Assembly (NCBI GenBank): GCA_965637545.1
Contig: OZ281499.1
Span: 558,001-622,000 of the forward strand
Direction: 5' to 3'
Length of the DNA stretch: 64,000 nucleotides
DNA from: Phallusia mammillata
Lineage: Eukaryota
The translations under genes and the position numbers were made by a program. Positions 3,249 to 54,477 of this stretch are shown piece by piece; position 1 is the stretch's first letter; the number at the start of each line of letters is the position of its first letter. The notes below the pieces were generated by a model. That model was not told the DNA's origin. It ran no database searches and saw only the letters and a list, made by a program, of their open reading frames with translations.

Positions 3249-3342
3249 ATGCTGTGGTTACTGTTTCTTATGTTGGTCGTCGGATGCGCGGAAGGTGAAT
3301 GTCCGGGCGAGGATTTCAGTCTTGCTCCTCGACCTTATATAA
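3249..3342 (+). CDS. LDLa-repeat GPCR gene 1, exon 1 (signal peptide)
   Basis: ATG at 3249 encodes MLWLLFLMLVVGCAEGECPGEDFSLAPRPYI, then a phase-1 GTAAGT donor at 3343. Near-identical paralogous exon at 29343. Splices in frame to 7552. Confidence 0.88.
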
Positions 3343-4119
3343 GTAAGTTTGCTTGGTTTTAAATAAATTTAAAAGTTATATATATGTCCTTTAGCGGTGT
3401 GGCGGTAGGACTGAAATCGTCGTTTTTTCTGTCCAAACCAAGTTTGCGTTTTTGTTATTTTGTTTGACAACATATGAGTGACGTTTACCAAACATTGGGG
3501 GCAAAAAATGTAAAGTAAAAACGTTGGACTATAAATTTGACGCCGAACTAATAATGACATTAGTAAAAGGGGATGTCAAAATCACTTTGATTTTACACTT
3601 GATTGCGATGCATCATACGTACAAATAAATGTTAGAAATTTACGTTTCTACATTTCAGCAAAGCAAAATCAGAAATAAACCGTGAAATAATAATCTAATG
3701 AAAGAGAAAGATAGACTTAATACCCAATGCTTGTCCCAGATTAAAATCTTGTTAGCTGCAGACAGTGCATACTATCCTATAAGGTCTTAACAGTGCAGCT
3801 GGTGACGAAAGATTGGCCACATTGGCTAGTGTGGCCATCCAACGGCAATCCAGTTTGTTGGGAGTATACAGTCTGATGTTGTAGCAGGTTTTTTACTGCG
3901 CACTACACGGTTACCAGACTGGCACGGTTTGTTAATTCACCCAGTAACGGATTTGCCATCCGTTGTGCACAATAACAGTCTTGACTTTAAGTACTAGTTT
4001 GGTTCGTTAATGGTTTTTCAGAGTCACTACTGTATACCGGCCTGGACTAACAAGATCCTAAAATAAACGTCGAAAGTGGAATGCGTTCATAGAATTTAAA
4101 CAAAACACTGCGATTTGGA

Positions 4120-6552: not shown

Positions 6553-7551
6553 CTCTAGCAGTTGTTGCTGGTTTCAAGTTTTGAAGCAACGATCATACGT
6601 TAATCACGTGACAGTCTAATCTTCCAGCTGCAGTTTTGCTGAGTAAGCTAGAAAGTATGAGCGCAGCAATCTGAGTCTTGCTAAAAATCAATTATTAAAA
6701 TGTTAATTGGATAACGGGTTATAATAGAAACTGATGCAGTCCGGACTCCCCCCTTTTTCTTTCTGTTAATTGGACGGGTAGAGGATAAAGCGCTTTGCCG
6801 CTTCAACGCGCCATTTAGAACTAGAAAACGGGACAATTTAGTGGCAGTTTGACGTGTGAATTGTGTATTCACTTGCGGTCTAGCACATTTGTGTGGGAAA
6901 TTTTCCGAACAAAGTGTTGCAGATTTAATGACGTCATAAAGCGCCATTAGGGAAATTCCCCAAACAAAGTGTTGGACACACTCCTTTAAAAATACGCCCC
7001 TGCTATAACCTATTTTGAAACATTAATATATTAATATTGGCTCCCATAGTAGCCAATGTTTTATAACCTTTGTTCGTTTCTGCAACCAGAAACTTATGGG
7101 TCCTCACACATGCAAAGTTGTAAATAATGGAAATTCTGAGATTGGCTAACCATAATTAAGTTTAGAGCCGTAAGTTGAAACATGGCAATGCATATTCTGC
7201 TAAAATAACCATGGAGTTACAAACTATACAAATCTCATTCAATTCAAAATCGTTAAAATGTTTTTACCCATTTTAGGAGTTAGTGGAGTAAACGGTGGGG
7301 CTACAGGGTGAGACGCAGATGCGTCCCCTTCAGGGAAGGGAAGCCATAATTAAAAGTGTTGACAGTTCGTGTAACGGTAATCAAAAGTGCGTGTTTCCAA
7401 CGGTTTAAACTAGTGCAATGTGAATTAAAATGGTGTGTTCGTCCCACCATAGAGTGCCACATTTTTAAGAGATCCACACAAAGTTCAGCACTATAAAAGT
7501 TTCTTTGAATTACCAAAGTTACTTAAAATATTTTTTGTGACTTTACTACAG

Positions 7552-10500
7552 AACCTGAAAATCTGTCGGTGTGCGAACCCCCATACAAAACATCCAACTG
7601 CACCTGCCCTTCTTCAATGTTCGAATGTGCTTGTCACAAGTTTGGTCGGTGTGGGGACAAACCAGGATGTATTGGGATGTGGAAGGTATATGACTTGAGT
7701 TCTTCACTGCGTGGGACTGGAGGTCATCGATTGTACGAATACGAAAACGACTGTGGTGATTGGAGCGACGAGTATAGTGAGGTTTGCCATGAAGGCAGGT
7801 TTCAGTGTGACTGCTTCAACACAACTTGCAAAGGTCATGTTGGGTGCGTGTGGGAGAGGTTGCGATGTGATGGAGTCATACATTGTTTAGATGGCAGTGA
7901 TGAAGTTAATTGCACTTGTCCAGCTCATAAGTTTGAATGCGATTGTTACAAAACAAACAACTGCAGAACTTACAATAGTGGATGCATGGGCAAGATGTAT
8001 CAATGTAATGGAAGAATAGAATGCATAGATGGCAGCGATGAAGTTAATTGCACTTGTCCAGCTCATAAGTTTGAATGTGATTGTTACAAAACAAAGAACT
8101 GTTCAACTTCAAGAGGTGGTTGCATCAACAAAGACTGGCAATGTGATGGATGGAATGACTGTGGAGATTTGAGTGATGAGGTTAATTGCATTTGTCCAGC
8201 TCGTAAGTTTGAATGCGATTGTTACAAAACAAGGAACTGTACAACTGGATATGGTTGCATCAACAAAAACAAGCAATGTAATGGATATAATAACTGTGGA
8301 GATTGGAGTGATGAAGTTAATTGCACTTGTCCTGCTAAAAAGTTTGAATGCCCTTGTTACAAAACAAAGAACTGCACAACTGGATATGGTTGCATTAACA
8401 AAGACAAGCAATGTAACGGATACAATGAATGTGGTGATTGGAGTGATGAAGTTAATTGCACTTGTCCAGCTCATAAGTTTGAATGTGATTGTTACAAAAC
8501 AAAGAACTGTACAACATACAAGCAGGGTTGCATTACCACAGCCAAGCAATGTAACGGATACAATGAATGTGGTGATTGGAGTGATGAAGTTAATTGCACT
8601 TGTCCAGCTGATACCTTTGAATGTGATTGTTACAAAACAAAGAACTGTTCAATTTTCATTGGTGGTTGCATCAACAAAGACAGGCAATGTAATGGATGGA
8701 ATGACTGTGGTGATTGGAGCGATGAAGTTAATTGCACTTGTCCAGCTCATAAGTTTCAATGTGCATGTGTTGGCAACAAACAATGTGACATCGATATGAA
8801 GGGAAGTTGTATTGACCGATCTTTGTTGTGTGATGGAAATCGTGACTGTTTTGACGGTAGTGACGAGACACATTACTCATGTAACTGCTCTGGAGTTTAT
8901 GCCAGATGTCCGTGTGATCCTGGTAACAAACATTGCCCATCTACTGGCAGATGCATATTTTTTGACTGGTTGGGTGATGGCTTTGAAGATTGCTATGATG
9001 CAAGCGACGAACTTTGTTCAGTTTCCAACTTCACTTGTCAGTCTTGCACAATGTTTGCCACAACTTGTAAGAGTGAACAACTTGCCAGGTATCTTGTACA
9101 TTCCACAGTTCCAGCAAAGTGCAACACAGTAATCCGACCATCATGTGCTGATGACATCAACAGTTGTGAAAGCAAGAATGTGATTTGCGTCACTTCCACC
9201 TGCAAAAAAACAGAAAAATTTTGTCAGAACATTTTTGTTTGTAAAAATAAAGAAGTCATCACTGAAAGTTCCTTTTGTGACTCAATTGGTAATTGTAATG
9301 ACAATAGTGACGAAATCAAGTCAGGATTTGGATTTAAATGCTCTGGATCATCGAGACAAGGTGTTTGTGTTTTGCCTCAAACCAACATTTACGATTCAGT
9401 GGCTCAATGTTCTGATAAATCTGATCTTTGTTTTGCCAACGGACAGTTTAGATGTTTTCAGTGCTTGGATAAAAAGTTAATCATATCACCCAAGCAAGTT
9501 TGTGACGGTATAGTGGACTGCTTTGATATGTCAGATGAGTGTTTGTGCTTGAATCAAAGTTTGTGTGATGATATAAGGGGTGGTTGTCCATCAAATCAGA
9601 TACATTGCCAAAATAAATCTGTTTGTTCATTTCAAAGTGGAAAGTTGTGTAATTCAAGTGTGCAATGTGTTGATCAAATAAACACAAAATACTGTTCGTC
9701 TGCTAATAATTTGGAACAAACTCAGTGTTTACCAGAAAATGTTGAAGACCTCGGACTTGACGAAATATTTAAGTGCGCAAAAACTGACAACAAAGCACTG
9801 AGGAGTAAATTTTCGAAATATTCAAATAAAAAAGTTTTGTTAAACTCCATATGTGATGGAATTATTGAGGACGACTTAAAACTACTTGGTGAAGTAAACT
9901 GTACAAATATGTTTTATTGTTTCTCAAATGGAAAGATCAGCATAAAAAACACCCAGGTTTGCGATGGAACAATTGATTGTGATGATGGCTCAGATGAATT
10001 TCCTGAACTTTGTCACAAAACTCGTTTTTATTGCAAGACCAAAAATTGGGTTTCTATTGACAGAAACACTTTTTGTGATGGAATTATCGATTGCGACAAC
10101 GAATCTGATGAAAGTAGATGTCGTTGTGAAAACAAAAGGTTTTATTGCACAAATAAACAACCTTTGTCAATTGAATGGAAACTGGTGCAGAATGGAATTC
10201 AAGATTGTTCAGATGGAAGTGATGAATGTGTAAACTTGGCTGGGGACGCATTTGCAGATATGAATGAAATGATTGCCAATCCCGTATACCAAGCAATTTT
10301 CTGGATAACAGCTATGCTAGCCTTGGGAGGAAATTTGTTTGTGTTCCTTGCAACTGCTCACAGCCTATGGAATGTAGACAGAAACAAAAATGTTTTCATT
10401 AACACTAATATTTTCATTCTCAACCTCTGTTGCTCAGATTTCCTCATGGGAATTTATCTGCTTGCAGTTATAGTGCAAGCCACACGATTTTCTGGCTCCT

Positions 10501-11438
10501 ACTGTTTGTTTGATAAGGAATGGAGATCAAGTAGTTTGTGTTCAGGGCTTGGAGCACTTGCAATTGTATCATCAGAAGGATCGGCCTTGACAATGACAGC
10601 CATGACCACTTTTCGTCTTGTATCAGCCTTTAAACCATTTATAATTCGAAGTGTAGGTGTTTACAGAATTTTACTTGCTGAATTGTTTTGCTGGATTTCG
10701 GCTGTTGTTTTGGCAACTGTTCCTTTACTAAAAGTTACTTCGCATTATTTTATAACTGATGTTCGGTTTCCAAACAACATTTTTGGAAATGATTTTGTTT
10801 CCAGGGAAAACATGTCACTTCTTGCAAAAAGAATTACCAATGTAGAGCCAGAAAGTTGGAATGATGTGAAACAAACTATCAAGCAAACGTTTCCTCGCAA
10901 CCCAATCGAAGGAGAGTTTGGATATTATGGAGAAACAAGCGTTTGTTTGCCACGTTTGTTTGCCACAACTAGTGAATTTGCTTGGGAATATTCAACTTTC
11001 CTCATCACAATCAACTTCCTCATGTTCATCTACATGGTGGTTGCATACGTTCTCATCTACAAACAAAGTAACCAGATGAAAGAATCCAGGAGCAATGATG
11101 TCAGCTCCAAGATGCAGAAGAGAATCTCAAGGTTGATTTTGACCGACTTCTGTTGCTGGATTCCAATTTGTGTCATGGGATATTTGAGTGTTGGAGGAAT
11201 CAAGATGCCACCAGATGCTTATGTGTTGAGTGCTTGTCTGTTGCTTCCAATCAACAGCGCTCTTAATCCCTTGCTTTACTCAAAAGCATTGGAAGATCAA
11301 CTTGTCAGGGCAAAGAAATGGCTAATGGAGAAATTATCCTCTCTACGGGCATCTACAAATCGTTCATCGGATTTAGCTGTGAAATACAACGCTGGTGCAG
11401 AGGAAGAGGGCGACAGAGTGATTGAAATAGTTGGGTGA
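7552..11438 (+). CDS. LDLa-repeat class A GPCR gene 1, main exon (GRL101/RXFP-like, LRR-less); spliced product 1326 aa
   Basis: Acceptor TACTACAG at 7551. Many LDLa motifs (CDG..DC.D.SDE) followed by a 7TM with NLCCSDFLMGIYL (TM2), WRSSSLC (ECL1/TM3), FCCWIP (TM6), PINSALNPLLY (TM7). Spliced length 3981 nt = 1327 codons. Confidence 0.95.
7917..8738 (+). repeat. Six coding tandem repeats of 135/138 bp (8-Cys LDLa variant) in gene 1
   Basis: CPAxxFECxCYKTxNC...GC......QC.G...C.D.SDEVNCx units start at 7917, 8055, 8193, 8328, 8463, 8601. Confidence 0.95.
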
Positions 11439-14796: not shown

Positions 14797-15293
14797 GGGT
14801 GCCTTCGAATACTACAGGTGCGCTAGGTGCGCTAGGTGCGCTTGGTGCGCTTGGTAACTCGCTTGGTAACCTTTTTTCGGGCAACGTAACTTAAAAATAC
14901 TGCAGGTAACTCTTTTTAGATCGATTAAACTCATAATAAGCACGACGTGACTCGAAAATACTGCAGCTGCCCTGTTTTTATGCGAGGAATTGTAAATACT
15001 GCAGTTAACGCAAATAATGCTGGAAAAGTGTTACGATAGTCCCAACACAACCAAAAACCAAAACCCTAAACTCTGAACCCGAAACTATGAACCCTAGCCC
15101 TAACCCTAACCCTAACCCTAAAAACAGTACATATACCACTATCATGTTACGTCGCAGTAACTACGCGTTTACTCGTTTCAAAAAAGGTTACCTGCACTGT
15201 TTACGGGCTTTGTGGAATTAAAACGAGTTACCTGTAGTTTACCAAGCGAAGTACCTAGCGGACCAAGCGCACCTGCAGTTTTCGAAGGCACCG
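14797..15293. mobile_element. MITE with 9-bp TSD (Mutator-like), subterminal 9-mers and internal telomeric repeats; U0 only
   Basis: TIR GGTGCCTTCGAA.ACT.CAGGTGCGCT; TSD CTGGTTCAA / CTGGTTAAA; (GGTGCGCTW)4 at the left end; (CCCTAA)3 at 15098-15115. Empty site in U1 at ~20860. Confidence 0.75.
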
Positions 15294-29342: not shown

Positions 29343-29436
29343 ATGTTGTGGTTATTGTTTTCATTGTTGGTCGTCGGATGCGCGGAAGGTGAATGTCCGG
29401 GCGAGGATCTAAGTCTTGCACCGCGACCTTATACAA
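29343..29436 (+). CDS. LDLa-repeat GPCR gene 2, exon 1 (signal peptide)
   Basis: MLWLLFSLLVVGCAEGECPGEDLSLAPRPYT, then a phase-1 GTAAGT donor at 29437. In frame with the acceptor at 36538. Confidence 0.88.
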
Positions 29437-30840: not shown

Positions 30841-31054
30841 TGTAACGTTCCACACTTTTAGTAGGTCACCAAATCAGTTTTATTATCACCTTAGTTTGCC
30901 TGTACGATCTTATTCAAATAGAATCCAACGATTAAACACGATAATTAGAGATACAAAACACACACAGCAATATAGCCACACCACGAGACAAACGGGCGAC
31001 AACCTCACGTAATCTCGATACCAAAACTTAAACAGAGAAATCATAATCGTTACA
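30841..31054 (-). repeat. 3' LTR of the Gypsy element
   Basis: 7 mismatches out of 214 against the 5' LTR. Preceded on the minus strand by PPT AGGGGGGAG (31058-31066). Confidence 0.95.
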
Positions 31055-31069
31055 GAGCTCCCCCCTAAA

Positions 31070-34000
31070 TAGGTTTGCGACCCGCAAACTACAAAACAGG
31101 CTCGGCAATAACACATACACAAACGAACGACAAGAACGAAAAAGACGCAATAGCAAGACATTTGCACTCCCGTTAACCATAATCCCAATCGCCGAGGGCG
31201 GACACAACGACCACGCCGTGTATACTGCTCAGGCTGCCCAACAGACTGTGGAGCACCCACGATATCATCCATTTCGGGTTCATCCTCTGCCAGCGCCATA
31301 TCCTTCTGTGGCAACTCGTTACTTTCAGTTCCTGTTTCCTGATGGTCCCGCACATGGAATGGTTTTAACTTATCAAAGCTGACAAGCAGCCGACGGCGAC
31401 CCCAACAATGTGACTGAATCCGATACGTTGAGTCACTCAACACTTTAATGACTTTGAAAGGTCCAACCCAGGGTTTCCAAAACTTCTTACAAGTTCCCTT
31501 CGGCATCACCGGTTCGTGAAAATAGACGAGGTCGCCCACACGGAAAGGAGAACCATGAATTCGCTTATCGTACAATGCTTTTTGGCGTTTTTGCTGTGTC
31601 CAACCATGGTCACGCGCGATTTTAAATGCAGTGCGGAGATCTACTTGAATCTTCTCAGCGTAAGTTCCAGGTGTCACATCTTCTGGCGGATCATTTTGTT
31701 GAAGGTCAAGAGAAATTTCCATTTCACGACCATGCTGCATGAAGAATGAAGTGTAACCGGTCGTCTCGCTAACGCTACTGTTGTACGCCGCCATCACCAT
31801 CGGTAATCGCGTATCCCAATCTGTTCCATCAGCAGCGACTCCCGCACAAAGCATTTGTCCGATAGTTTTGTTCAGAAAGGAAATTCGTTCCGCGATCATT
31901 GTGAATCCTTTCTGGGATGCCCTGTTCACAGATCCACTTGAAAACAAGCTCATTTGCCACGGTTTCGGCACATTGATCTTTAATTGCACAGGCCTTTCCA
32001 TACTTAGTGAAGTAGTCCACCATAACCAGAATATATTTGTTGCCCAATTCAGATTCAGGCAGCGGTCCAACAATATCAATCCCGATCCGAGCATTTGGAT
32101 ATCCTACTCTGCTGGGAACCATGGGTGTACGACGTGCTTTCTGGGGCGATTTTCTGGATTGACAAACCGTACACGACCGACAAAAGGCGACGACCGCATC
32201 ATTAAGCCCCGGCCAATAATATCCTTGTCTAATTGGAGCCAATGTCCTGTTGACACCCATGTGTCCTGCCAATGGCTTGTTGTGAAACTCTTCCAGAATA
32301 ATTTTTCTTAATGCACATGGGACAATAGTTTGCAAACCCCTGTGAGGCTTTCCTGCTGCGTTTTCCGCACGTCGACACGCAACACCATCCTCCCTCAAAA
32401 CTAACATGTCCCACATGTTCCAATATGTACGGAGCTCCCTCGGTAGCCCGTCCAATTCGTTTGACGAAGGTCGCTCACCGCATTCCAACCACTGGATGAC
32501 GTGACTAATTACATCATCTTTCTTTTGGCAATCCAGAAAGTGTGAAGCACCTAGCTCTGCTCGAGTGCTAATTTCTTGGGTTAGCCGACATACTGGTTCT
32601 GACGCTGGAATGCGGGAAAGAGCATCGGCATTCTGATGTTTTCTGCCGGCTCGGTGAATAATCTCCAAATCATAAGCACGGTCTTCCAAGTAGGTAGGTG
32701 CGGTAATACTTCAAGAAAAACACCACCGCAAGTAACTCTTTGTGTGTAGTTGAGTAGCGACCTTCCGCCTTGCTTAATGTCCTGCTACCGTACGATAAGA
32801 CGTATTCGACCCCATCATGCACCTGGGAGAGGACAGCACCGATAGCCTTGTCGCTAGCGTCACAATCCAACACAAACTTTCCTTCATCCCTCGGAAACGC
32901 CAATATGGGAGCGGAAGTCAAACGGCATTTTAAGATATCGAAGCTTTCCTGGTGGGCCGAGCTCCATTTGAAACTGTTTTCACCGCCTGTTGCTACCAGT
33001 TTGTGCAGTGGGCATGCAATTCGGGCGAAATCCTTAATGAAACGTCGATAGTAGGACGCCAAACCCAAAAAGCTTCGCAGCTCAGTGACAGAACTCGGGA
33101 CGGCCCATTGTGTCACAGTCCATACCTTCCCCGGGTCAGGGCCCACCCCTTTATTACTCACAATGTACCCCAAAAAAGGAACTTCGTCACGGTTGCAGTT
33201 GACACACGGGTTTTAATTTCAACCCAGCACGCTTAAGGCGATTTAAAACTTTCCCCAAATTCTTAATATTGTCAGTCTCATTAGATGCGTAACACGAAAC
33301 ATCGTCAATATAGAACAAACAAATATCACCCAAACCCCTTAGCACAACAGCCATCAAACGCTGAAACGTGGCACAAGCATTAGTTAAACCAAATGGCAAG
33401 CGATTAAACTCATACAAACCGCTGTGTGTCGCAAATGCCGTTTTGTGTTATATCCCGACGTTTTGTGTTATGCCGTTTTGTGTTATATCCCGACGTCAAA
33501 TCCAGTGTTGAGAAAAATTTCGCACCTCCAAGGACATCTAATGTATCGTCGATACGAGGGAGGGGAAAGGAATCTTTTACCGTCGCACTATTGAGACGCC
33601 GATAGTCAACGCAAAACCGATAGGAACCATCAGGCTTCTGGACTAAAACAATTGGAGAACTCCAATCAGAAGAACTCGGCGAAATCACGTCGTATCGGAG
33701 CATCTTCTCCACCATTTTGTCAATCCTCTTCCGGTGCACGATCGGTGCCCTCCGGGGATGCTGTTTGATTGGTGGCCCAGTAGTTTCAATTCGGTGTTCA
33801 GCCAACTCGGTAAAACCCAGGTCGTCAGAATGCTGAGAAAACACTTCCCGGTGGTCCCACAGCAACTGGGCAAGGGTTTCCGGCTCAGCCAGCCTTAAGG
33901 AATCTCTTCGTACTTTAGCGCAGCTAAGAACCCTCGAAATTCATCGTCGCTCCAGTCGATGGGCGTGCCCTGTTCCCTTGAATCTTCTTTCCTCGACACA

Positions 34001-34798
34001 TCACGCACAGCCACGGATTCCTCAGGCATAACAGCCAGTTGGCCGAACCCAGCCACAGGATGAATCACACCAACGTTTGTACCTTTGTGTAGACAAACCG
34101 GTTCCTCAGACGTATTTAACGCACGCACAAGTAATTGACCATCGTCTGACTGTAAAAGGGACCTCGCACCTCGCACCTTCGAGTCTGGATTCGACTCGAA
34201 CATCCCGATGAGAGGGGATCTGTTTAACTTGCGGTTTCCAATATCTGCAGCGACAAAACTTTTACATCCAGCAGCTATTACTTGATCACAACTTGCATAA
34301 ACACGATAACAGAAGGACACACCTTGGCGAGACGTGAACGGCACAAATGCTCCACCAGCATGCAACACTCTCTGGGAGTACAGAACGTCACACTGGTGAG
34401 CCAACAGAAAGTCATGGCCAAGCAAGCAAGCGTTACCAGTCAGACTCCTGTTAACGAAGAAGTTACACAACACATCTAAACCACCGATCTTAACACGTAG
34501 TTCCGCCACACCATCAGCAGGAAGCAAGGTCGATCCATCCGCTTGGTACAAAACAGAGGTCGGTGCGGCCAAGGTGATCACTCGAGACCCTCTTACTCTT
34601 TCTAGAACGTCATAACTCATCAAACATACAGGTGACCCTGTATCCACTGTGAAAGTGATCCCTTGTTCTTGTACGCTTCCGAACACATACACTAACAGAA
34701 TCTGCGTCGTCAGGTTGACTCAGAGTAGCTAACGGAACTACATTGGTTGGGGTTGGGCCAGACTCCTCTCGCAATCTTCCAACCCATTTCCGTTTAAA
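31070..34798 (-). pseudogene. pol: Gypsy pol (protease, RT, RNase H, integrase), multiply frameshifted
   Basis: PR VDTGS (33895-34692); RT YRFCVDYRRLN and FYIDD (33187-33865); RH LDCDASD (32670-33173); IN GHMG, IGIDIVGPL and the GPF motif (30910-32689). Confidence 0.92.
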
Positions 34799-36203
34799 GC
34801 AGGGGTCACCAAACTTTTTTTACTGCGGGCCGGATAAGTTTAATAAAAATTTGCGCGGGCCGGACAGTTTACATGCCCCAGCGCCGTCTTCCCGAACTTA
34901 GCCCGCAAGGCAGTTTTGATAAGGGATCAAGATATGGTCTTTCTATACTCCCATTAAAAATCTGGTGGTGCGACTATTAAATTGTATAGTTAGTCTCATC
35001 TTACAAGCAATGTTTGTATATTACGTCATAAGTGACCTAAGAAAGCAATTGTTTGCGCACAATTGACACTTGTAGTCTTGTTTGTGACGTAACAAACTGG
35101 CTTTGGGTCAATCCTGGGCGTTGTAATCCCACAAAACAAGGTAATATTAATTCTACATATCGCGACAGGAAAACTTTCGTAAGAAGTAGATTATTTTTTA
35201 AAAGTTACAAAGTTATCAATGCGATTTGACAACCTAAAAAATGTGGTCGTGGGCCGGATGAAATGACCTCGCGGGCTGGATCTGGCCTGCGGGCCGTAGG
35301 TTGGTGACCCCTGGTTTAAAGGACAATTGCGCCGTATGTGGCCAGATTTGCCACATCCATAGCACGTGATATTGCTTGGGCGGTTGTATGAAACTCTTCT
35401 GGGAGGCGGAACTTTGGAGATACGTTGTAGCTTTTCCACAATCTCCTTCCTTGTCTCCTGCGTCTGGGTGTGCACCGCTAAGTTTTTCCAACCGATCGCC
35501 TATGGAAGGTTTGTTTTCCTGATTTACTCCATGTACCCTCTCCCCACTCCACTTTGAAGCAATTCCCAGCAGTTCAGAACCACGGCGATGTTTGTTGGCA
35601 GCCTCTATCAGTTCTTCCGGCGTCAGATTTTGGCCCACATTGAAAATGTAAAAAGCAAGATTCCTGTCCTGTAGACCACGGAAGAAAGCGCTGCATACAG
35701 TACGGTCACGTATTTGCATTACACTTTCCACAGTACTATCACCGTAGGCTAGACGAGCTATCTCACCCAATTCCCCCATGTAAGTTTCAATCGATTCACC
35801 CACTTTGTGCTTTCTCTCCATAAGCTTACACATGGCAGTGCTGCTATCAATTTCAGGTGCAAAATCTTGTTCTCAGGCGATTGCAAAAATACTTAAAATC
35901 TTGTTTTTGTTCTGCAGTGAGGTTTATTTTCTTTATAGCCAAACCAATTTCGGGCGCACAAAAAGTTGTTAAAGACATTGAACGCTGTTGCATGGGGATT
36001 TTAAGTAGGTCAGCAAAATTTTCAAAACTCACTAACCACGCTGCAAAATCATGTTTCCCATCAAATTGAACCGGTGTATTTTTCCATTTCGAAGAACAAG
36101 CTTTTGCCTCTTTTACCTTCTCATCACGACGTTCTGGGGTATCAAGGGGAGTTTTATTCGAAATTGAAGTAGATGGAAATGGTTCTCCTCCAGCTAAATC
36201 CAT
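34738..36203 (-). pseudogene. gag: Gypsy gag, frameshifted and interrupted by a MITE
   Basis: Fragments 35853-36203, 35234-35833 and 35191-35475, the last with the CCHC knuckle CYGCGKSGHIRRNC. Removing the MITE continues NCPLNGNGLEDCERSLAQPQPM to TAG at 34738-34740. Confidence 0.85.
34800..35313. mobile_element. hAT MITE inserted at the gag-pol junction
   Basis: TIR CAGGGGTCACCAA / TTGGTGACCCCTG; perfect TSD GTTTAAAG (34792-34799, 35314-35321). Confidence 0.93.
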
Positions 36204-36479: not shown

Positions 36480-36538
36480 CCCACTAAGTTCCTTTGAAAT
36501 ATTTAAGTTGCTTATATTATTTGTAACTTTACCCACAG

Positions 36539-39500
36539 AACCTGACAATCTCTCGGTGTGCGAGTGGCCGTACCGCGGTCCCAACTGCACCTGCCCTTCT
36601 TCAATGTTCGAATGTGCTTGTCACAAGTTTGGTCGGTGTGGCCAAAAACCAGGATGTATTGAGATGAATATATATGACAGGATTTTTTCATCCAATGGGC
36701 CTGGCAGTCCCGTATTGTCCAGTGCCAACAACAACTGTGGTGATTGGAGCGATGTATTTAGAGAGGTTTGTCCTGAAGGCTGGTTTCAGTGTGACTGCTT
36801 TAACACAACTTGTAAAGGATATGTTGGGTGTATGAGGAAGGAGCAGCGATGTGATGGAGAGATAGATTGTTTAGACAGAAGTGATGAAGTTAATTGCACT
36901 TGTCCAGCTCATAAGTTTGAATGCCTTTGTTACAAAACAAACAATTGCAAAATTGGATATGGTGGTTGCATCAACAAAGACTGGCAATGTGATAGATATA
37001 ATAACTGTGGAGATTGGAGTGATGAAGTTAATTGCACTTGTCCAGCTCATAAGTTTGAATGCCCTTGTTACAAAACAAACAACTGCACAACTGGATATGG
37101 TTGCATCTCCAAACACAGGCAATGTGATGGAACTAATGACTGTGGAGATTGGAGTGATGAAGTTAATTGCACTTGTCCAGCTTACGAGTTTGAATGTGAT
37201 TGTTACAAAACAAAGAACTGCACAACTAGACATGGTTGCATCAACAAAGACAGGCAATGTGATAGTTATAATCACTGTGGAGATTGGAGTGATGAAGTTA
37301 ATTGCACTTGTCCAGCTCCTAAGTTTGAATGTGATTGTTACAAAACAAAGAACTGTACAACTAAACAAGGTTGCATCAACAAAGACTGGCAATGTGATAC
37401 ATATAATGACTGTGGAGATTGGAGTGATGAAGTTAATTGCACTTGTCCAGCTCATAAGTTTGAATGTGATTGTTACAAAACAAAGAACTGTACACATCCA
37501 TGGGGTGGTTGTATCGTCAAAGACAGGCAATGTGATGGAAATAATGACTGTGAAGATGGGAGTGATGAAGTTAATTGCACTTGTCCAGCTCATAAGTTTG
37601 AATGTGATTGTTACAAAACAAAGAACTGTACACGTTCATGGGTTGGTTGCATCAACAAATTCCTGCAATGTAATGGAAGAAATGACTGTGGAGATTTGAG
37701 TGATGAAGTTAATTGCACTTGTCCAGCTCATAAGTTTGAATGTGATTGTTATAAAACAAAGAACTGCACAACTGCATGGGGTGGTTGCATCTACAAAGAC
37801 CAGCATTGTGATGGATATAATGACTGTGGAGATTGGAGTGATGAAGTTAATTGCACTTGTCCAGCTCATAAGTTTGAATGCGATTGTTACAAAACAAAGA
37901 ACTGTACAACTTACAGTGGTTGCATCAACAAAGACAGGCAATGTGATGGAAATAATAACTGTAGAGATTACAGTGATGAAGTTAATTGCACTTGTCCAGC
38001 TCATAAGTTTCAATGTGCATGTGTTGACACGAAACAATGCAATATCAGTATAGAGGGAAGTTGTATTGACCGGACTTTATTATGTGATGGAAATCAGGAC
38101 TGTTTTGATGGAAGTGATGAGACATATTACACGTGTAACTGCTCTGGAGTTTACTCAAGATGTCTGTGTGATCCTGGAAACAAACACTGTCCATCTACTG
38201 GCAGATGCATACCATTTGATTGGATTGGTGATGGATTTAAGGATTGCTACGATGGGAGTGACGAACTTTGTTCAGTTTCCAACTTCACATGTCAATCTTG
38301 CACAATGTTTGCCACAACTTGTAAGAGTGAACAAATTGCCAGGTATCTTGTGCATTCCACAGTTCCAGCAGAGTGCAACACAGTAATCCAACCATCATGT
38401 GCTGATAACATCAACAGTTGTGAAAGCAAGAATGCGATTTGCATCTCTTCAAACTGCGAAAAAATAGAAAATTTTTGCAAGAAACTATTTATATGTGAAA
38501 ACCAACAATTCCTTCCCAGCAGTTCATTTTGTGACTCAGTTACTAGTTGTAGTGACAATAGTGATGAAATCAAGTCAGGATTTGGATTTAAATGTCCTGG
38601 ATCATCAAGACGAGGTGTTTGTGTTTTGCCCCAAGCCAATATTTACGATTCAGTGGCTCAATGTTCTGATAAATCTGATCTTTGTTTCGTCAACGGACAG
38701 TTCAGATGTTTTCAGTGCTTGGATAAAAAGTTAATCATATCATCCAAGCAAGTTTGTGATGGTATAGTGGATTGCTTTGATATGTCAGATGAGTGTTTGT
38801 GTTTGAATCAAAGTTTGTGTGATGAGATAAGGGGTGATTGTCCATCAAATCAGCTGCATTGCCAAAATAAATCTGTCTGTTCTATTGCAGGTGGAGTGTT
38901 GTGCAATTCAAGCATACAGTGTGTTGATCAAGTAAACATGAAATACTGTTCTTCTGAAAATATCTTGGAAGAAACTCAGTGTTTTCCAGAAAACGTTAAA
39001 AGTCTCGTTGAAAGATTTGATGAAATATTTTGGTGTGCAAAAACAGACAACAAAGTGCTGAGGAGAGAGTTTCAAAATCAGCTTTTACAAAGGAAAGATG
39101 GCAAAGTTCTGATGAACTCAATATGTGACGGCATTATTGGGGATGACCTAAAACTAATTGGTGAAGTTAACTGTCCAAATATGTTTTATTGTTTCTCAAA
39201 TGGAGACATCAACATAAAAAGCACTCAGGTATGCGACGGAAAAGTTGATTGTGATGACAGCTCAGACGAATTTCAAGAACTTTGTCACAAAACGCGGTTT
39301 TATTGTAAAAGCAACAGAAAATTGTCAATTGACAGAAAAACTGTTTGTGATGGAATTATCGACTGTGACAATGAATCTGATGAAAGTAAATGTCAATGCG
39401 AAAAAAAAAGATTTTATTGCACAAATGAACAACCTTTGTCGATTGAATGGAAACTGGTGCAGAATGGAATTCAAGATTGTTCTGATGGAAGTGATGAATG

Positions 39501-40710
39501 TGTAAACTTGGCTGGGGACGCATTTGCAAATGTCAATGAAATGATTGCCAATCCAATTTACCGAGCAATTTTCTGGATAACAGCTGTATTGGCCTTGGGA
39601 GGAAATCTGTTTGTGTTCATCGCAACTGCCCAGAGCTTATGGAATGTAGACAGAAACAAAAACATTTTTATTAACACTAGTGTTTTCCTTCTCAACCTCT
39701 GTTGCTCAGATTTCCTTATGGGAATTTATCTGCTTGCAGTTATAGTGCAAGCCACACGATTTTCCGGCTCTTATTGTTTGTTTGATAAAGAATGGAGATC
39801 AAGTAGTTTGTGTTCCGGGCTTGGAGCACTTGCAATTGTATCATCAGAAGGATCAGCCTTGACAATGACAGCCATGACCACTTTTCGCCTTGTATCAGCT
39901 TTCAAACCATTTACAATTCGAAGTGTAGGAGTCTCTAAAATTATATTTACTGAAATATGTTGCTGGATTTTAGCTGTAGTTTTGGCAACCGTTCCTTTAC
40001 TCAAAGTCACTTCGGAATATTTTACAACTGATGTTTGGTTTCCAAACAACATTTTTGGAAATGACTTTGTTTCCTGGGAAAACATGTCACTTCTTGCAGA
40101 AAGAATTACCGATATAAGACCCAAAAATTGGAATGATGTAAAACAAACTATCAAGGAAACATTTCCTCGCGACCCAATCAAAGGGGAGTTTGGATATTAT
40201 GGAGAAACAAGTGTCTGTTTGCCACGTTTGTTTGCCACAACCAGTGAATTTGCTTGGGAATATTCAACTTTCCTTATCACAATCAACTTCCTTATGTTTA
40301 TCTACATGGTTGTTGCATATGTTCTCATTTACAAGCAAAGTAATCGCATGAAAGAATCCAGAAGCAATGATGTCAGCTCCAAAATGCAGAAGAGAATCTC
40401 AAGATTGATATTAACAGATTTCTGCTGCTGGATTCCAATTTGTGTCATGGGATACTTAAGTATTGGAGGAATCAAAATGCGACCGGATGCTTATGTGTTA
40501 AGCGCTTGTCTGTTGCTTCCAATCAACAGCGCCCTTAATCCCTTGCTTTACTCTAAAGCAATAGAAGATCAACTTGTCAGGGCAAAGAAATGGCTGGTGG
40601 AGAAATTGTCCATTATACGGGCATCCACAAATCGTTCATCTGATTTAGCTGTGAGATACAACGCTGGTGCAGAGGAAGAAGGCGACAGAGTGATTGAAAT
40701 AGTTGGATGA
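36539..40710 (+). CDS. LDLa-repeat class A GPCR gene 2, main exon; spliced product 1421 aa
   Basis: Acceptor ACCCACAG at 36538. Same architecture as gene 1, 7TM/C-tail about 90% identical by eye. Spliced length 4266 nt = 1422 codons, uninterrupted. Confidence 0.95.
36901..37992 (+). repeat. Eight coding tandem repeats of 135/138 bp (8-Cys LDLa variant) in gene 2
   Basis: Unit lengths 46,45,45,45,46,46,46,45 aa; the next, divergent module starts at 37993. Confidence 0.95.
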
Positions 40711-51800: not shown

Positions 51801-53896
51801 CGTGAAATTTCTTCACCAATGACTTTGACAACATTTTACACGAAGTGACGAAGGCCTTACCTCATTTTAAATTAACACATACAAATTCTATGTGACAAGA
51901 TTTGACTTTGAATGACAGGGGGCAGCTGTCAGAAGTTCGTAAAAACACACGCCGAGCGCAAAATCTTATTCAACGATGAAATATTGTTGCTGGGGATAAA
52001 CTTAACAAACTGAAAATTACTCTTTCAGCTTGAAATCCGATTGGCCGAAAAGGAAGAACAACTACTGGAGCGTGACCTGGTGTTCGAGCAGTCGTCACGG
52101 TTGACTGATCGCGTCAACAACAAGGTCAACGTTGGAAAAGACGACTCACTTGTCCTCGCAAAAAAAGTGGGTTGGTTTTCATTTACGGTCACGCAAGATA
52201 CAAAGCTAGTTGTGTTGTAAATTTGCGAACCTGCTTGAACCAGAACCCTAGAGAGGAAAATGATATAAAAGACATGTTCTTGGTACTTTCGAGCACTAGT
52301 TATATCTAGACCAGTTAGTGTTAAAAAATTAGGAACTTGTTAGTGATAAAAATAGGGAATTAAAATGCTTTACCCGGCAGTAAGCTTAAATGTTTTAGCT
52401 TCAAAGCAACAATAAAACATTATAATGGATCGGGCACATGGCATATAAAAGTCTGATCACCAAAATTTAAACCGACAATTCGGTACATGTTTTTGTCGTG
52501 GGTCCTGCTTCAAACTAAGCCAATTTCGAGCGAATTCTAAAAGTAATGGCGTCAATTTCATCCTATAGAGATGAAAGTAAGAGATAATTTCACGTTGCTT
52601 AACAGGTAAACAACTATCAATCCCGCATTAAAGACGTGACAAGGAAAATGATGAGCCTTGTTTCGGAGTTGGCGATGAAACAGGCTGACGCGATGAAACT
52701 TCAACAACAATCGAAACAAATGTACAACGACCTGGAGCAGTGTTACGTCAGAATGGAACAGGTACACGTTGCTATAACAACAGCTGTTGAATGGTGAACA
52801 GACATTGGTAAACTCGCTTGTTTCAACATGCACTGAATTTCTCTACTTTTATTCGGACATGTAGCCTACTTGTTTATTCGACAAAACGGTTAAATTCCAA
52901 ATCTTGTCCTTGCGTGCCGGCGCCAACGCTCTCTGCTGCAACTAACTTGGTACTTTTTGTTAATCAACTCATTCGACAAAATATTTAAACTCAAAATCTT
53001 ACTCTTCCCTGCTGGCGTCTATGCTCTCTGCCGCCAACTTACGTTTGTTCGTTTTGTTTTAGGGCGAAGCACCGAACGAGGAAATCGCGCTGGAATGGGA
53101 AAAATCGCTTCGTTCCGACGATCAGCAGCGCGTCCAAGCAGCTGAGAAAGCGATGGTAAGTAGACATGTGCGGTTTATCCAACATTACTGTGACTAGGAA
53201 TAGTTTTGCTTCTGATAGAACAGCACCGAGAAATAGTTGTTGTGGAGCCATCACTTATTGCTGATGTGCAAAAACACAATAGCTGTTAATTAAAGCGTTT
53301 TAACCCGCAAACTGTAAAGCGAAAAACTATTTAGTGTGTTTTCTCAAATTCCCCCATGTACATAATTATAGTACTCCACACCCATTCAAGGCGTGGTATA
53401 GAATCAAGTCGGTCTCTTTTCACCACCATGTGGCAAGGCGTAGGTTAGAAAAATCTCACCTGCGGTGGGATTCGAACCCACGACGGGAGTCCTTCCTGGG
53501 ACTTACGGTTTACCAACTGAGCTACGCAGACTCAGTGGTGAACCTGCCGAAATTTGTATCACAATCACCGTTGCCTGCCTTAGTGTGTTTTCATGCTACT
53601 CTGACAAAACGCATACAATTGAATGCTGCACATGTCAGCTTCGTAGTAGGGGATCGCCAGTTCGACTCATTTACACGTTTTTCTAACACCAGGTGGAGCA
53701 AGAAGAGCAGCAGTATCAGATCGCAGGCGGATCGACAACCACCGCCGAACCGCGACCCAACGCTTATATTCCCGACGATGAATCCGAATTACCCATTCCG
53801 CGTCCTTATGGCTCACTTGCCCCATTCAAACCCACAGAACCCGGCTCATCAATGCGTCACATACGGAAACCGGTTCTACGACCCATCGAGATATGA
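42928..53896 (+). CDS. CCDC146: Coiled-coil domain-containing protein 146 (axonemal; MBO2 family), 21 coding exons, 953 aa
   Basis: Exons 42928-43077, 43189-43271, 43391-43475, 43934-44058, 44784-44934, 45674-45831, 46198-46306, 46648-46766, 47276-47462, 48456-48551, 49213-49383, 49515-49640, 49702-49829, 49944-50168, 50761-50880, 51222-51330, 51520-51648, 52029-52166, 52606-52761, 53063-53155, 53693-53896. All GT-AG and phase-consistent, total 2862 nt. C-terminus [12 protein letters not shown]...[30 protein letters not shown] matches the vertebrate CCDC146 tail as I recall it. Confidence 0.95.
43600..43810 (+). mobile_element. Penelope-like remnant with hammerhead-like motif in CCDC146 intron 3
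   Basis: GATA-CTGATGA-T-GCTGTAAAGGC-GAAA-TATGTA-TAT at 43654-43689. Element boundaries are approximate. Confidence 0.5.
45839..45868. repeat. Poly(A)30 tract just after the exon 6 donor
   Basis: 30 consecutive A. Confidence 0.9.
47629..48179. mobile_element. hAT MITE in CCDC146 intron 9
   Basis: TIR CAGTGCTTCCCAACC / GGTTGGGAAGCGCTG; degenerate TSD AGCCAGAC / AGCTAGAG. Confidence 0.8.
48612..48700 (+). ncRNA. Candidate minimal hammerhead ribozyme motif (Penelope type) in CCDC146 intron 10
   Basis: CC-CTGATGA-A-GGCG...CGTT-GAAA-CGTC-GG. Related copies at 57505-57600 (minus) and 57695-57750 (plus, partial). Confidence 0.45.
50448..50622. mobile_element. pogo/Tigger-like MITE; related fragments at ~45990-46160 and ~57127-57250
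   Basis: TIR CAGTAAACCTCGGTTAA / TTACCCGTGGTTTACTG; shared internal AAAGCCTTACCACAT...AAGATCCGGATTAACCGA. TA TSD not preserved. Confidence 0.6.
53360..53533 (-). mobile_element. tRNA-derived SINE-like element in CCDC146 intron 20
   Basis: Minus strand has A box TAGCTCAGTTGG, T-arm GTGGG-TTCGAAT-CCCAC and pairable acceptor arms, but a broken D-stem and a 6-nt anticodon loop, followed by a non-tRNA tail. Confidence 0.6.
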
Positions 53897-54091
53897 TTTC
53901 TGTGTGTGTTATATTGTTTCTATGGTTGACTGTTTTGTTACTAACAAGTGCGAAGAACTGATAGTTTCGTTTATAAATTTTATCATGCACATAAATTGCT
54001 TATACTGGCTGCAGGATTGCAAGAGAAGTGCAGCACGTGTCCAATCTTTACTGCAACATAGTTCTTTGGTAGACCCGGTGGATGGTAACAG

Positions 54092-54477
54092 TAGGGACGG
54101 GTCAAAACTGCAAATGTTCTGTTTGGTCGAGCACCGAGCGTCTCACGATAATGCTCGGTGCATTATGACGCCACAAACATTCCCGATTTCACGCCAGTTT
54201 TGCAGCTTTTCAAGGTCCCTTACGTCACCAGCGGTGTATTAAGCTGTACAGGCCCCAGAAGTACGCGTTTGTCACAAACTAACATTCTAACGCATATAAA
54301 AAGGCCATTTTTGTTCTGGGATACCCTTTAGAACACTATCGTATGATAGCAGGGCACAAATATGCAAATTTAATACCCGGGTCAGTTTGTGCAACTGCTC
54401 GGCCGAGCACCGAGCATTAAAAACAGCGATGCTCGGTACCGAGTAGTCGGGTTTTGGTTCGGTTCGGCCCATCCCTA
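54092..54477. mobile_element. hAT (TAGGGATG-type) MITE; copies at ~60310-60676 and 62578-62942 (inverted)
   Basis: TAGGGACGGG / CCCATCCCTA termini; TSD GGTAACAG / GTTAACAG. The 62578 copy has TSD CTGGTAAC / CTGGTAAG. Confidence 0.85.

Follow-up and report, generated by a model that had tools for sequence, protein, structure and literature searches.

The closest described relatives of the genes considered here are a set of orphan G-protein-coupled receptors (GPCRs), the LDLRR-GPCRs, reported from Ciona and recognised there as an ascidian lineage-specific expansion (Kamesh, Aradhyam and Manoj 2008; PMC2396169). Fourteen members were confirmed, with one to ten LDL-receptor class A (LA, or LDL-A) modules, no leucine-rich repeats (LRRs) and a seven-transmembrane (7TM) domain like that of the relaxin/INSL3 receptors; lipoproteins or large complexes were proposed as ligands (PMC2396169). 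Here we analyse a 64,000-nucleotide stretch of the Phallusia mammillata genome (assembly GCA_965637545.1, contig OZ281499.1, positions 558,001 to 622,000 of the forward strand; hereafter the window), which contains two such genes, each with a tandem array of near-identical, eight-cysteine LA units in the ectodomain. Our preferred reading, to which we assign a probability of roughly 0.7, is that the array is the ligand-binding array of an LDLRR-GPCR, one of a germline repertoire of about 100 or more that exchange units and are subject to selection focused on the binding pocket.

The two genes are laid out as follows, in positions of the window:

3249..3342, + strand: gene 1 exon 1, with ATG, hydrophobic signal peptide and a phase-1 GTAAGT donor at 3343
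7552..11438, + strand: gene 1 exon 2, a single open frame comprising the whole ectodomain, the 7TM domain and the tail
7599..7910, + strand: gene 1 pre-array region, two divergent LA-like modules (from the translation)
7911..8732, + strand: gene 1 array, six tandem eight-cysteine LA units (Tandem Repeats Finder, TRF, and in-frame reading)
8733..10274, + strand: gene 1 non-array ectodomain, non-repetitive LA modules reaching the first transmembrane helix (TM1), without LRR
10275..11282, + strand: gene 1 7TM domain of LGR/relaxin-receptor type (search of PDB sequences, motifs)
29343..29436, + strand: gene 2 exon 1, signal peptide, with the 94 nt and phase of gene 1 exon 1
36539..40710, + strand: gene 2 exon 2, a paralog with 15 LA stretches and a 7TM domain (translation, Pfam)
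36895..37986, + strand: gene 2 array, eight eight-cysteine LA units (TRF, in-frame reading)

The array of gene 1 lies inside a long open frame at 7569-11438 (1289 aa) and that of gene 2 inside one at 36508-40710 (1400 aa). TRF gives the first array a span of 7889-8761 (period 138, 6.4 copies, 84% matches) and the second a span of 36880-38057 (period 135, 8.3 copies). Read in frame, the units of gene 1 occupy 7911-8048, 8049-8186, 8187-8321, 8322-8456, 8457-8594 and 8595-8732, with lengths of 138, 138, 135, 135, 138 and 138 bp. An earlier interpretation of the window made from its letters alone – the sequence-only reading – had described six repeats of 135 or 138 bp, and both TRF and the in-frame reading bear this out, at 7911-8732; it had also read correctly the peptides of the variable segments and the series Y/W/K/K/K/R at the Trp position. 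Exons 1 and 2 of both genes were analysed separately. We pair exon 1 of gene 1 with exon 2 because its phase-1 donor fits the AG acceptor at 7550-7551, and the peptide that it encodes (MLWLLF...GCAEGECPGEDFSLAPRPY) is conserved upstream of ten paralogs as well as in the window. Off-frame and antisense open reading frames (ORFs) that cross the arrays (8109-8549 on the minus strand, 8173-8799 on the plus, 36871-37593 on the minus and 36881-37699 on the plus) are by-products of a stop-free repeat and were set aside as genes.

Evidence that these genes encode modular LA ectodomains joined to a GPCR came from Pfam, which recognises 12 Ldl_recept_a (PF00057) stretches in gene 1 and 15 in gene 2, together with a 7tm_1 domain (PF00001, E 1e-14), and from a search of PDB sequences; the architecture proposed by the sequence-only reading is upheld by both. 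No LRR family was found by Pfam in either gene at E <=0.01, the LA modules continuing up to TM1, and a PRKCSH-like match fell just under threshold (34.8 bits against a cut-off of 34.9). Among solved structures the ectodomain matches LRP2. For the 7TM domain the top PDB match is RXFP1 (7tmw_R, E 9e-25), followed by TSHR, LHCGR, FSHR and LGR4; gene 1 retains CWIP (11154) and NPLLY (11265), and its DRY motif reads TFR with the Arg kept (10605). Between genes 1 and 2 the ratio of replacement to silent change (dN/dS, or omega) is 0.16 in the 7TM domain, 0.25-0.29 in the non-array ectodomain and 0.23 overall, with silent divergence (dS) of 0.36 outside the array.

The nearest named proteins are all ascidian (Ciona intestinalis, Phallusia mammillata, Clavelina lepadiformis and Styela clava) and combine PF00057 with PF00001, at no more than 49% identity in the 7TM domain; a UniProt protein of Phallusia mammillata (P0033) is 100% identical to the genome over residues 77-1371. 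In the ESM Atlas the nearest clusters bear the label Ctenophora, an origin that was rejected in view of these ascidian matches and the 100% identity. By this evidence we assign both genes to the ascidian LDLRR-GPCR family, an orphan family. The likeness to the Ciona receptors is close: a signal peptide, tandem LDL-A modules and nothing else, no LRR, a relaxin/INSL3-receptor-like 7TM domain, and named Ciona proteins as the closest annotated relatives (47-48% identity in the 7TM domain); the Ciona protein P0015 also has eight-cysteine arrays with a C-D-C-x4-C insert. The claim of the sequence-only reading that this was an undescribed system therefore fails at the level of architecture, the LDLRR-GPCR cluster having been described in Ciona in 2008 (PMC2396169). 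The differences lie elsewhere. Against 14 Ciona members with one to ten modules stand at least 98 scored paralogs in Phallusia, whose near-identical eight-cysteine units have a framework of their own (C-D-C-Y-K-T-K-N-C) and two N-x-T sequons each, and diversifying selection at pocket residues is absent from the 2008 paper (PMC2396169). For that family a literature search returned nothing later than 2008, and no report of the 98 or more paralogs, of unit homogenisation, of pocket dN/dS or of shared hot columns was found in the searchable literature; the array of eight-cysteine modules, the approximately 100 or more paralogs and the pocket-focused diversification are, on that search, unreported properties of a known orphan family.

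More distant relatives share parts of this design. RXFP1 and RXFP2, the type C leucine-rich-repeat-containing GPCRs (LGRs), provide the best solved match to the 7TM domain, place an LA module N-terminal to it and have the CWxP, NPxxY and DRY-Arg features, whereas their ectodomain consists of one LA module and about ten relaxin-binding LRRs, as against 12-15 LA modules, no LRR and TFR for DRY in Phallusia. Membership of the type C LGRs was rejected, as the LRR ectodomain between LA and 7TM is missing (Pfam). GRL101 of Lymnaea and the type C2 LGRs likewise carry several LA modules on an LGR-type 7TM domain, and some Ciona relatives are automatically annotated as GRL101-like; unlike the Phallusia genes, GRL101 has LRRs. 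With the LA modules of LDLR, VLDLR and LRP2 the units share the fold, the calcium-cage motif and a ligand pocket that maps to unit columns 30, 33, 35 and 37. They depart from them in that the Cys2-Cys3 loop holds an added Cys pair that could form a disulfide, the linker is a single residue, and the pocket residues vary where the known modules conserve Trp and acidic side chains. An endocytic receptor of the LDLR/LRP type – a possibility raised by the automatic 'LRP1B-like' names of some relatives – was rejected because the proteins are without EGF modules, YWTD beta-propeller and single-pass transmembrane segment (Pfam).

The unit itself comprises 45 or 46 residues with eight cysteines, and its consensus is C-T-C-P-A-H-K-F-E-C-D-C-Y-K-T-K-N-C-[loop]-G-C-I-N-K-D-W-Q-C-D-G-Y-N-D-C-G-D-W-S-D-E-V-N. 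HMMER alignments to LRP2 modules identify the six canonical LA cysteines as C3, C10, C25, C32, C38 and C1 of the next unit; W30 aligns with the conserved ligand-contact Trp, the calcium cage corresponds to D33-G-x35-x-D37-C...D40-x-S-D43-E44, and the pocket of Trp and acidic residues that clamps ligand lysines in known LA modules falls on the four columns named above. C12 and C18 form the additional pair (C-x5-C), and a single residue separates neighbouring modules. The cysteines, D40, S42, D43 and E44 are invariant or nearly so across 106 units. With its six cysteines and the predicted D-x-S-D-E calcium cage, the unit is assigned to the LA fold. An AlphaFold2 (AF2) model of a single unit, built from a 103-row alignment, has a mean predicted local distance difference test score (pLDDT) of 83.9, and Foldseek matches it to solved LA modules of LRP2, VLDLR, CD320 and LDLR (TMq 0.64-0.72, probability 1.00). 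The two N-x-T sequons, N17-C-T19 and N46-C-T2, are putative glycosylation sites.

How large is the family to which these genes belong? Array DNA has at least 120 matches in the genome at about 40 loci, and a search with the 7TM domain of gene 1 indicates at least 98 paralogs (98 scored matches among 529 first-look candidates) at 72-91% identity. About 80 of the scored matches lie in open frames longer than 1000 aa; truncation or stops affect about 15. Most fall on contigs C3 (0.3-18.6 Mb) and C5, the others on C6, C1, C2 and C7. Retrieval of 20 loci yielded an intact frame (1077-1311 aa) in 14 and a broken one in six. Strict pattern matching recovered 107 units from 30 arrays, one to eight per array, and all but one are without a stop codon; these 30 arrays and 106 units are the basis of the unit analyses. 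What emerges is a large, clustered multigene family with pseudogenes, the form expected of a diversified recognition repertoire.

Two observations bear on the recent history of these loci. At one of them (L032, G000:C3:659762-660571) five units are identical or a single residue apart and the frame is broken: the array is a very recent tandem amplification and the locus probably a pseudogene. Elsewhere, at 4.19-5.05 Mb of G000:C3, 7TM copies of equal score sit in identical frames of 1238 aa (4196363, 4428028, 5052674, 4291066 and 4934833), which suggests either that segments of about 100 kb or more, with family members inside them, have recently been duplicated, or that the duplication lies in the assembly.

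Evidence of selection on the units came firstly from the distribution of amino-acid variation, which is concentrated in columns 6, 7, 11, 16, 20-23, 27, 29, 30, 35 and 37, and is drawn mainly from Tyr, Trp, Arg, Lys, Asn, Asp and Gly. Residues of the pocket switch among Trp, Arg, Lys and Tyr; the three acidic residues of the lysine pocket are for the most part not retained, with column 35 mainly Tyr, Ile or Asn. Site models fitted to the 97 unique units favour M2a over M1a (likelihood-ratio statistic 185), placing 17% of sites at an omega of 3.7, with posterior probabilities above 0.99 at columns 7, 21, 22, 27, 29, 30, 35 and 37. Because of recombination and a weak FastTree tree we treat this result as supporting evidence only. 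A second test was tree-free and cross-validated: the eight columns of highest entropy were picked in one half of the arrays and tested in the other. Relative to silent change elsewhere, dN/dS at the held-out columns is 2.7-2.8 (2.2-3.6 by bootstrap over arrays), and the ratio becomes 2.0-2.65 when the silent changes of these same hot codons serve as the baseline. The four pocket columns (30, 33, 35 and 37), set beforehand, have an omega of 1.96 (1.24-3.89) in 51 independent nearest pairs. There is, by these measures, a replacement excess at about eight of the 46 codons, including the Trp position and two positions of the predicted calcium cage and lysine pocket.

The pattern recurs in the closest homologs in the databases, P0001-P0023, from JGI/ENA assemblies. 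These have the same eight-cysteine arrays on another framework (C-D-C-Y-Q-S-x-x-G-C), and the column entropy of 38 of their modules correlates with that of the Phallusia units (Spearman 0.78, p 2e-10); hot columns and an Asp/Asn dimorphism at column 33 are common to both. Neither of two mutational explanations accounts well for these results. CpG dinucleotides are scarce in the arrays (7 in 822 nt in gene 1, 4 in 1092 nt in gene 2) and therefore do not explain the replacement excess; and the hot codons alternate with nearly fixed silent sites (columns 28, 31, 34 and 36), which makes a local mutational hot spot unlikely.

Silent sites suggest exchange among the units. The sequence-only reading had held the framework to be nearly invariant even at silent sites. 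This went too far: the framework codons of the 14 units in the window differ at a proportion of silent sites (pS) of 0.22 (dS 0.26), mainly through flips between TGC and TGT. Silent divergence of the units is nonetheless below that found elsewhere in the genes. Within one set of 16 genes the difference at four-fold degenerate third positions is 0.117 between units of different genes and 0.092 between units within a gene, compared to 0.244 in the 7TM domain and 0.214 in the non-array ectodomain. The array units are about half as silently diverged as the remainder of the same genes; partial homogenisation would account for this. General codon bias does not, since codon choice is set by position and not by amino acid: Cys is TGC at positions 1, 18 and 25 and TGT at 12, 32 and 38. 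Non-orthologous units are closer to one another than are the bodies of their genes. This implies a partial form of concerted evolution, through exchange of sequence or replacement of arrays. The concerted evolution of the framework that had been proposed survives in this partial form, with silent sites about two-fold less diverged, and not as a clustering of units mainly by gene: just 11 of 35 cherries in the unit tree (FastTree; a weak tree) join units of the same array, a result that fits birth-and-death with exchange between genes better than strict homogenisation within arrays.

Silent polymorphism in the framework is chiefly that of TGC/TGT at unit codon 10 (42 versus 64 of 106), for example at 7938-7940 and 8076-8078. 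When codon 10 is TGC, the GAT that follows creates a CpG at the boundary, and this suggests that the polymorphism stems from CpG decay rather than random drift.

A critical issue is whether such data require selection at all. An LA array might be a structural stalk or spacer with unconstrained loops, which drift while unit turnover and gene conversion produce a semblance of framework and loop. Several results weigh against the preferred reading, and the first three of them speak directly for drift. Across the broader set of 11-12 variable columns, omega in nearest pairs is 1.1-1.35, with intervals that include 1. In the three youngest paralog pairs the array has evolved under purifying selection, with an omega of 0.23 compared to 0.32 elsewhere in the gene (15 changes altogether). 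Recombination inflates M2a-type site tests, and it is clearly present among the units. In addition, the AF2 model of three modules (39 near-identical rows, pLDDT 44) gives no inter-module geometry, and the finding that matches to expressed sequence tags of the LDLRR-GPCRs are mainly from blood or haemocytes (PMC2396169) concerns Ciona, not Phallusia. Against drift stand the held-out dN/dS, with a bootstrap lower bound of 2.2; the codon-by-codon interleaving with near-fixed silent sites, which is hard to obtain from a hot spot or from patchy conversion; and the position of the hot columns, which match the ligand pocket known from LA modules and are hot again in the closest database homologs. 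We consider neutral drift unlikely. The diversified binding surfaces envisaged by the sequence-only reading stand insofar as held-out dN/dS exceeds 1 at hot codons, Trp and cage codons among them, with CpG considered; the caveats are recombination and the youngest pairs, in which no excess is seen.

The reading that we prefer, selection on a repertoire of exchanging ligand-binding arrays, can be put in mechanistic terms. The receptor would be an ascidian-specific relative of the relaxin-type LGRs that has no LRR, ordered as signal peptide, LA modules only, and rhodopsin-family 7TM domain, and the array would be the distal portion of its ligand-binding ectodomain. Unit number would change by unequal exchange, while swaps of sequence within and between genes would keep the framework DNA alike. 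Selection would favour change at about eight codons per unit: at the tip of the hairpin before Cys3, at three positions around the Trp, and at two in the cage and lysine pocket. Each module may then present a pocket of different shape, and each receptor may read its own set of extracellular macromolecular or peptide ligands. Binding could be relayed to the 7TM domain via the membrane-proximal LA module, as by the LDLa module in RXFP1/2.

The nature of the ligands allows a further alternative: that the receptors serve a small number of endogenous ligands (lipoproteins, vitellogenin-like proteins or peptide hormones, for example), with paralogs differing mainly in expression and modules tuning avidity. 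Ligands of this kind have been proposed both for the Ciona LDLRR-GPCRs (PMC2396169) and for snail GRL101, LA modules classically bind lysine-rich endogenous proteins, and the strong purification of the 7TM domain noted above fits as well. Such a scheme is hard to reconcile with about 100 or more paralogs, roughly 15-30% of them pseudogenes, or with pocket residues that switch among Trp, Arg, Lys and Tyr while the tri-acidic lysine pocket is mostly lost, and we judge it improbable. As for what a diversified repertoire might do, recognition by haemocytes or of an immune type is our tentative first suggestion, chemosensation is possible and only a little less favoured, and a role centred on endogenous ligands such as lipoproteins or peptides seems rather unlikely.

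Comparison with the expanded TLR, NLR and SRCR repertoires of sea urchin and amphioxus holds in outline only: a conserved repeat scaffold with a variable putative binding surface, many clustered genes with pseudogenes among them, and hot positions that favour Tyr, Trp, Arg, Asn and Asp. The variable lymphocyte receptors (VLRs) of lamprey are a looser analogy. In contrast to all of these the Phallusia receptors have another fold and a GPCR output, somatic assembly is unsupported, and an immune role is conjectural. Somatic diversification – in which targeted hypermutation or cassette conversion would alter the array of immune or germ cells – shares with these genes just the resemblance of tandem cassettes with localised variability, and is highly improbable given that all variation seen is germline-encoded across paralogs, that recent duplicates differ little, and that neither diversification machinery nor a donor-cassette arrangement was found in the window.

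The LDLRR-GPCR family ranks among the largest receptor repertoires in Phallusia. Orphan since 2008, it can now be approached through a testable hypothesis of specificity-diversified receptors, founded on repertoire size, pocket variability and recurrence in homologs, and our results single out residues for mutation and modules for exchange. If the hypothesis is true, it would bear on the perception of chemicals or non-self in tunicates, the sister group of vertebrates, which have neither olfactory receptors nor adaptive immunity, and the LA fold would serve as a scaffold for variable binding that signals through G proteins. A bolder proposition, that these 100 or more germline LA-array GPCRs are the main variable receptors of ascidians for non-self or environmental macromolecules, each 45-residue module a small paratope with its Trp and calcium-cage pocket under diversifying selection, we regard as doubtful. 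Ascidians lack olfactory receptors of the vertebrate type, as a census of Ciona GPCRs shows; on this view the LA-array receptors would be the equivalent, with GPCR output, of the expanded innate receptor families found in other invertebrate deuterostomes.

The remainder of the window contains several other elements. An ORF of 302 aa at 53334-54242 on the plus strand has no Pfam match; it may be open by chance or belong, as an exon, to an unrelated gene. Intron 1 of gene 2 harbours the remnant of a Ty3/gypsy-type long terminal repeat retrotransposon (30910-36203, minus strand), with a gag-like ORF bearing a CCHC knuckle, an aspartyl protease, reverse transcriptase-RNaseH, and the zinc-binding, core and C-terminal parts of an integrase; these domains are split over several ORFs and the frame is therefore broken. 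Approximately 1.5 kb upstream of exon 1 of gene 1 lies a 143-bp tandem satellite (501-1751; 8.6 copies, 96% identity) for which TRF also reports higher-order periods of 291 and 439. Finally, an interstitial telomere-like tract, (AACCCT)5, adjoins microsatellites of 14-mer and 9-mer units (15090-15121 and 14816-14855).

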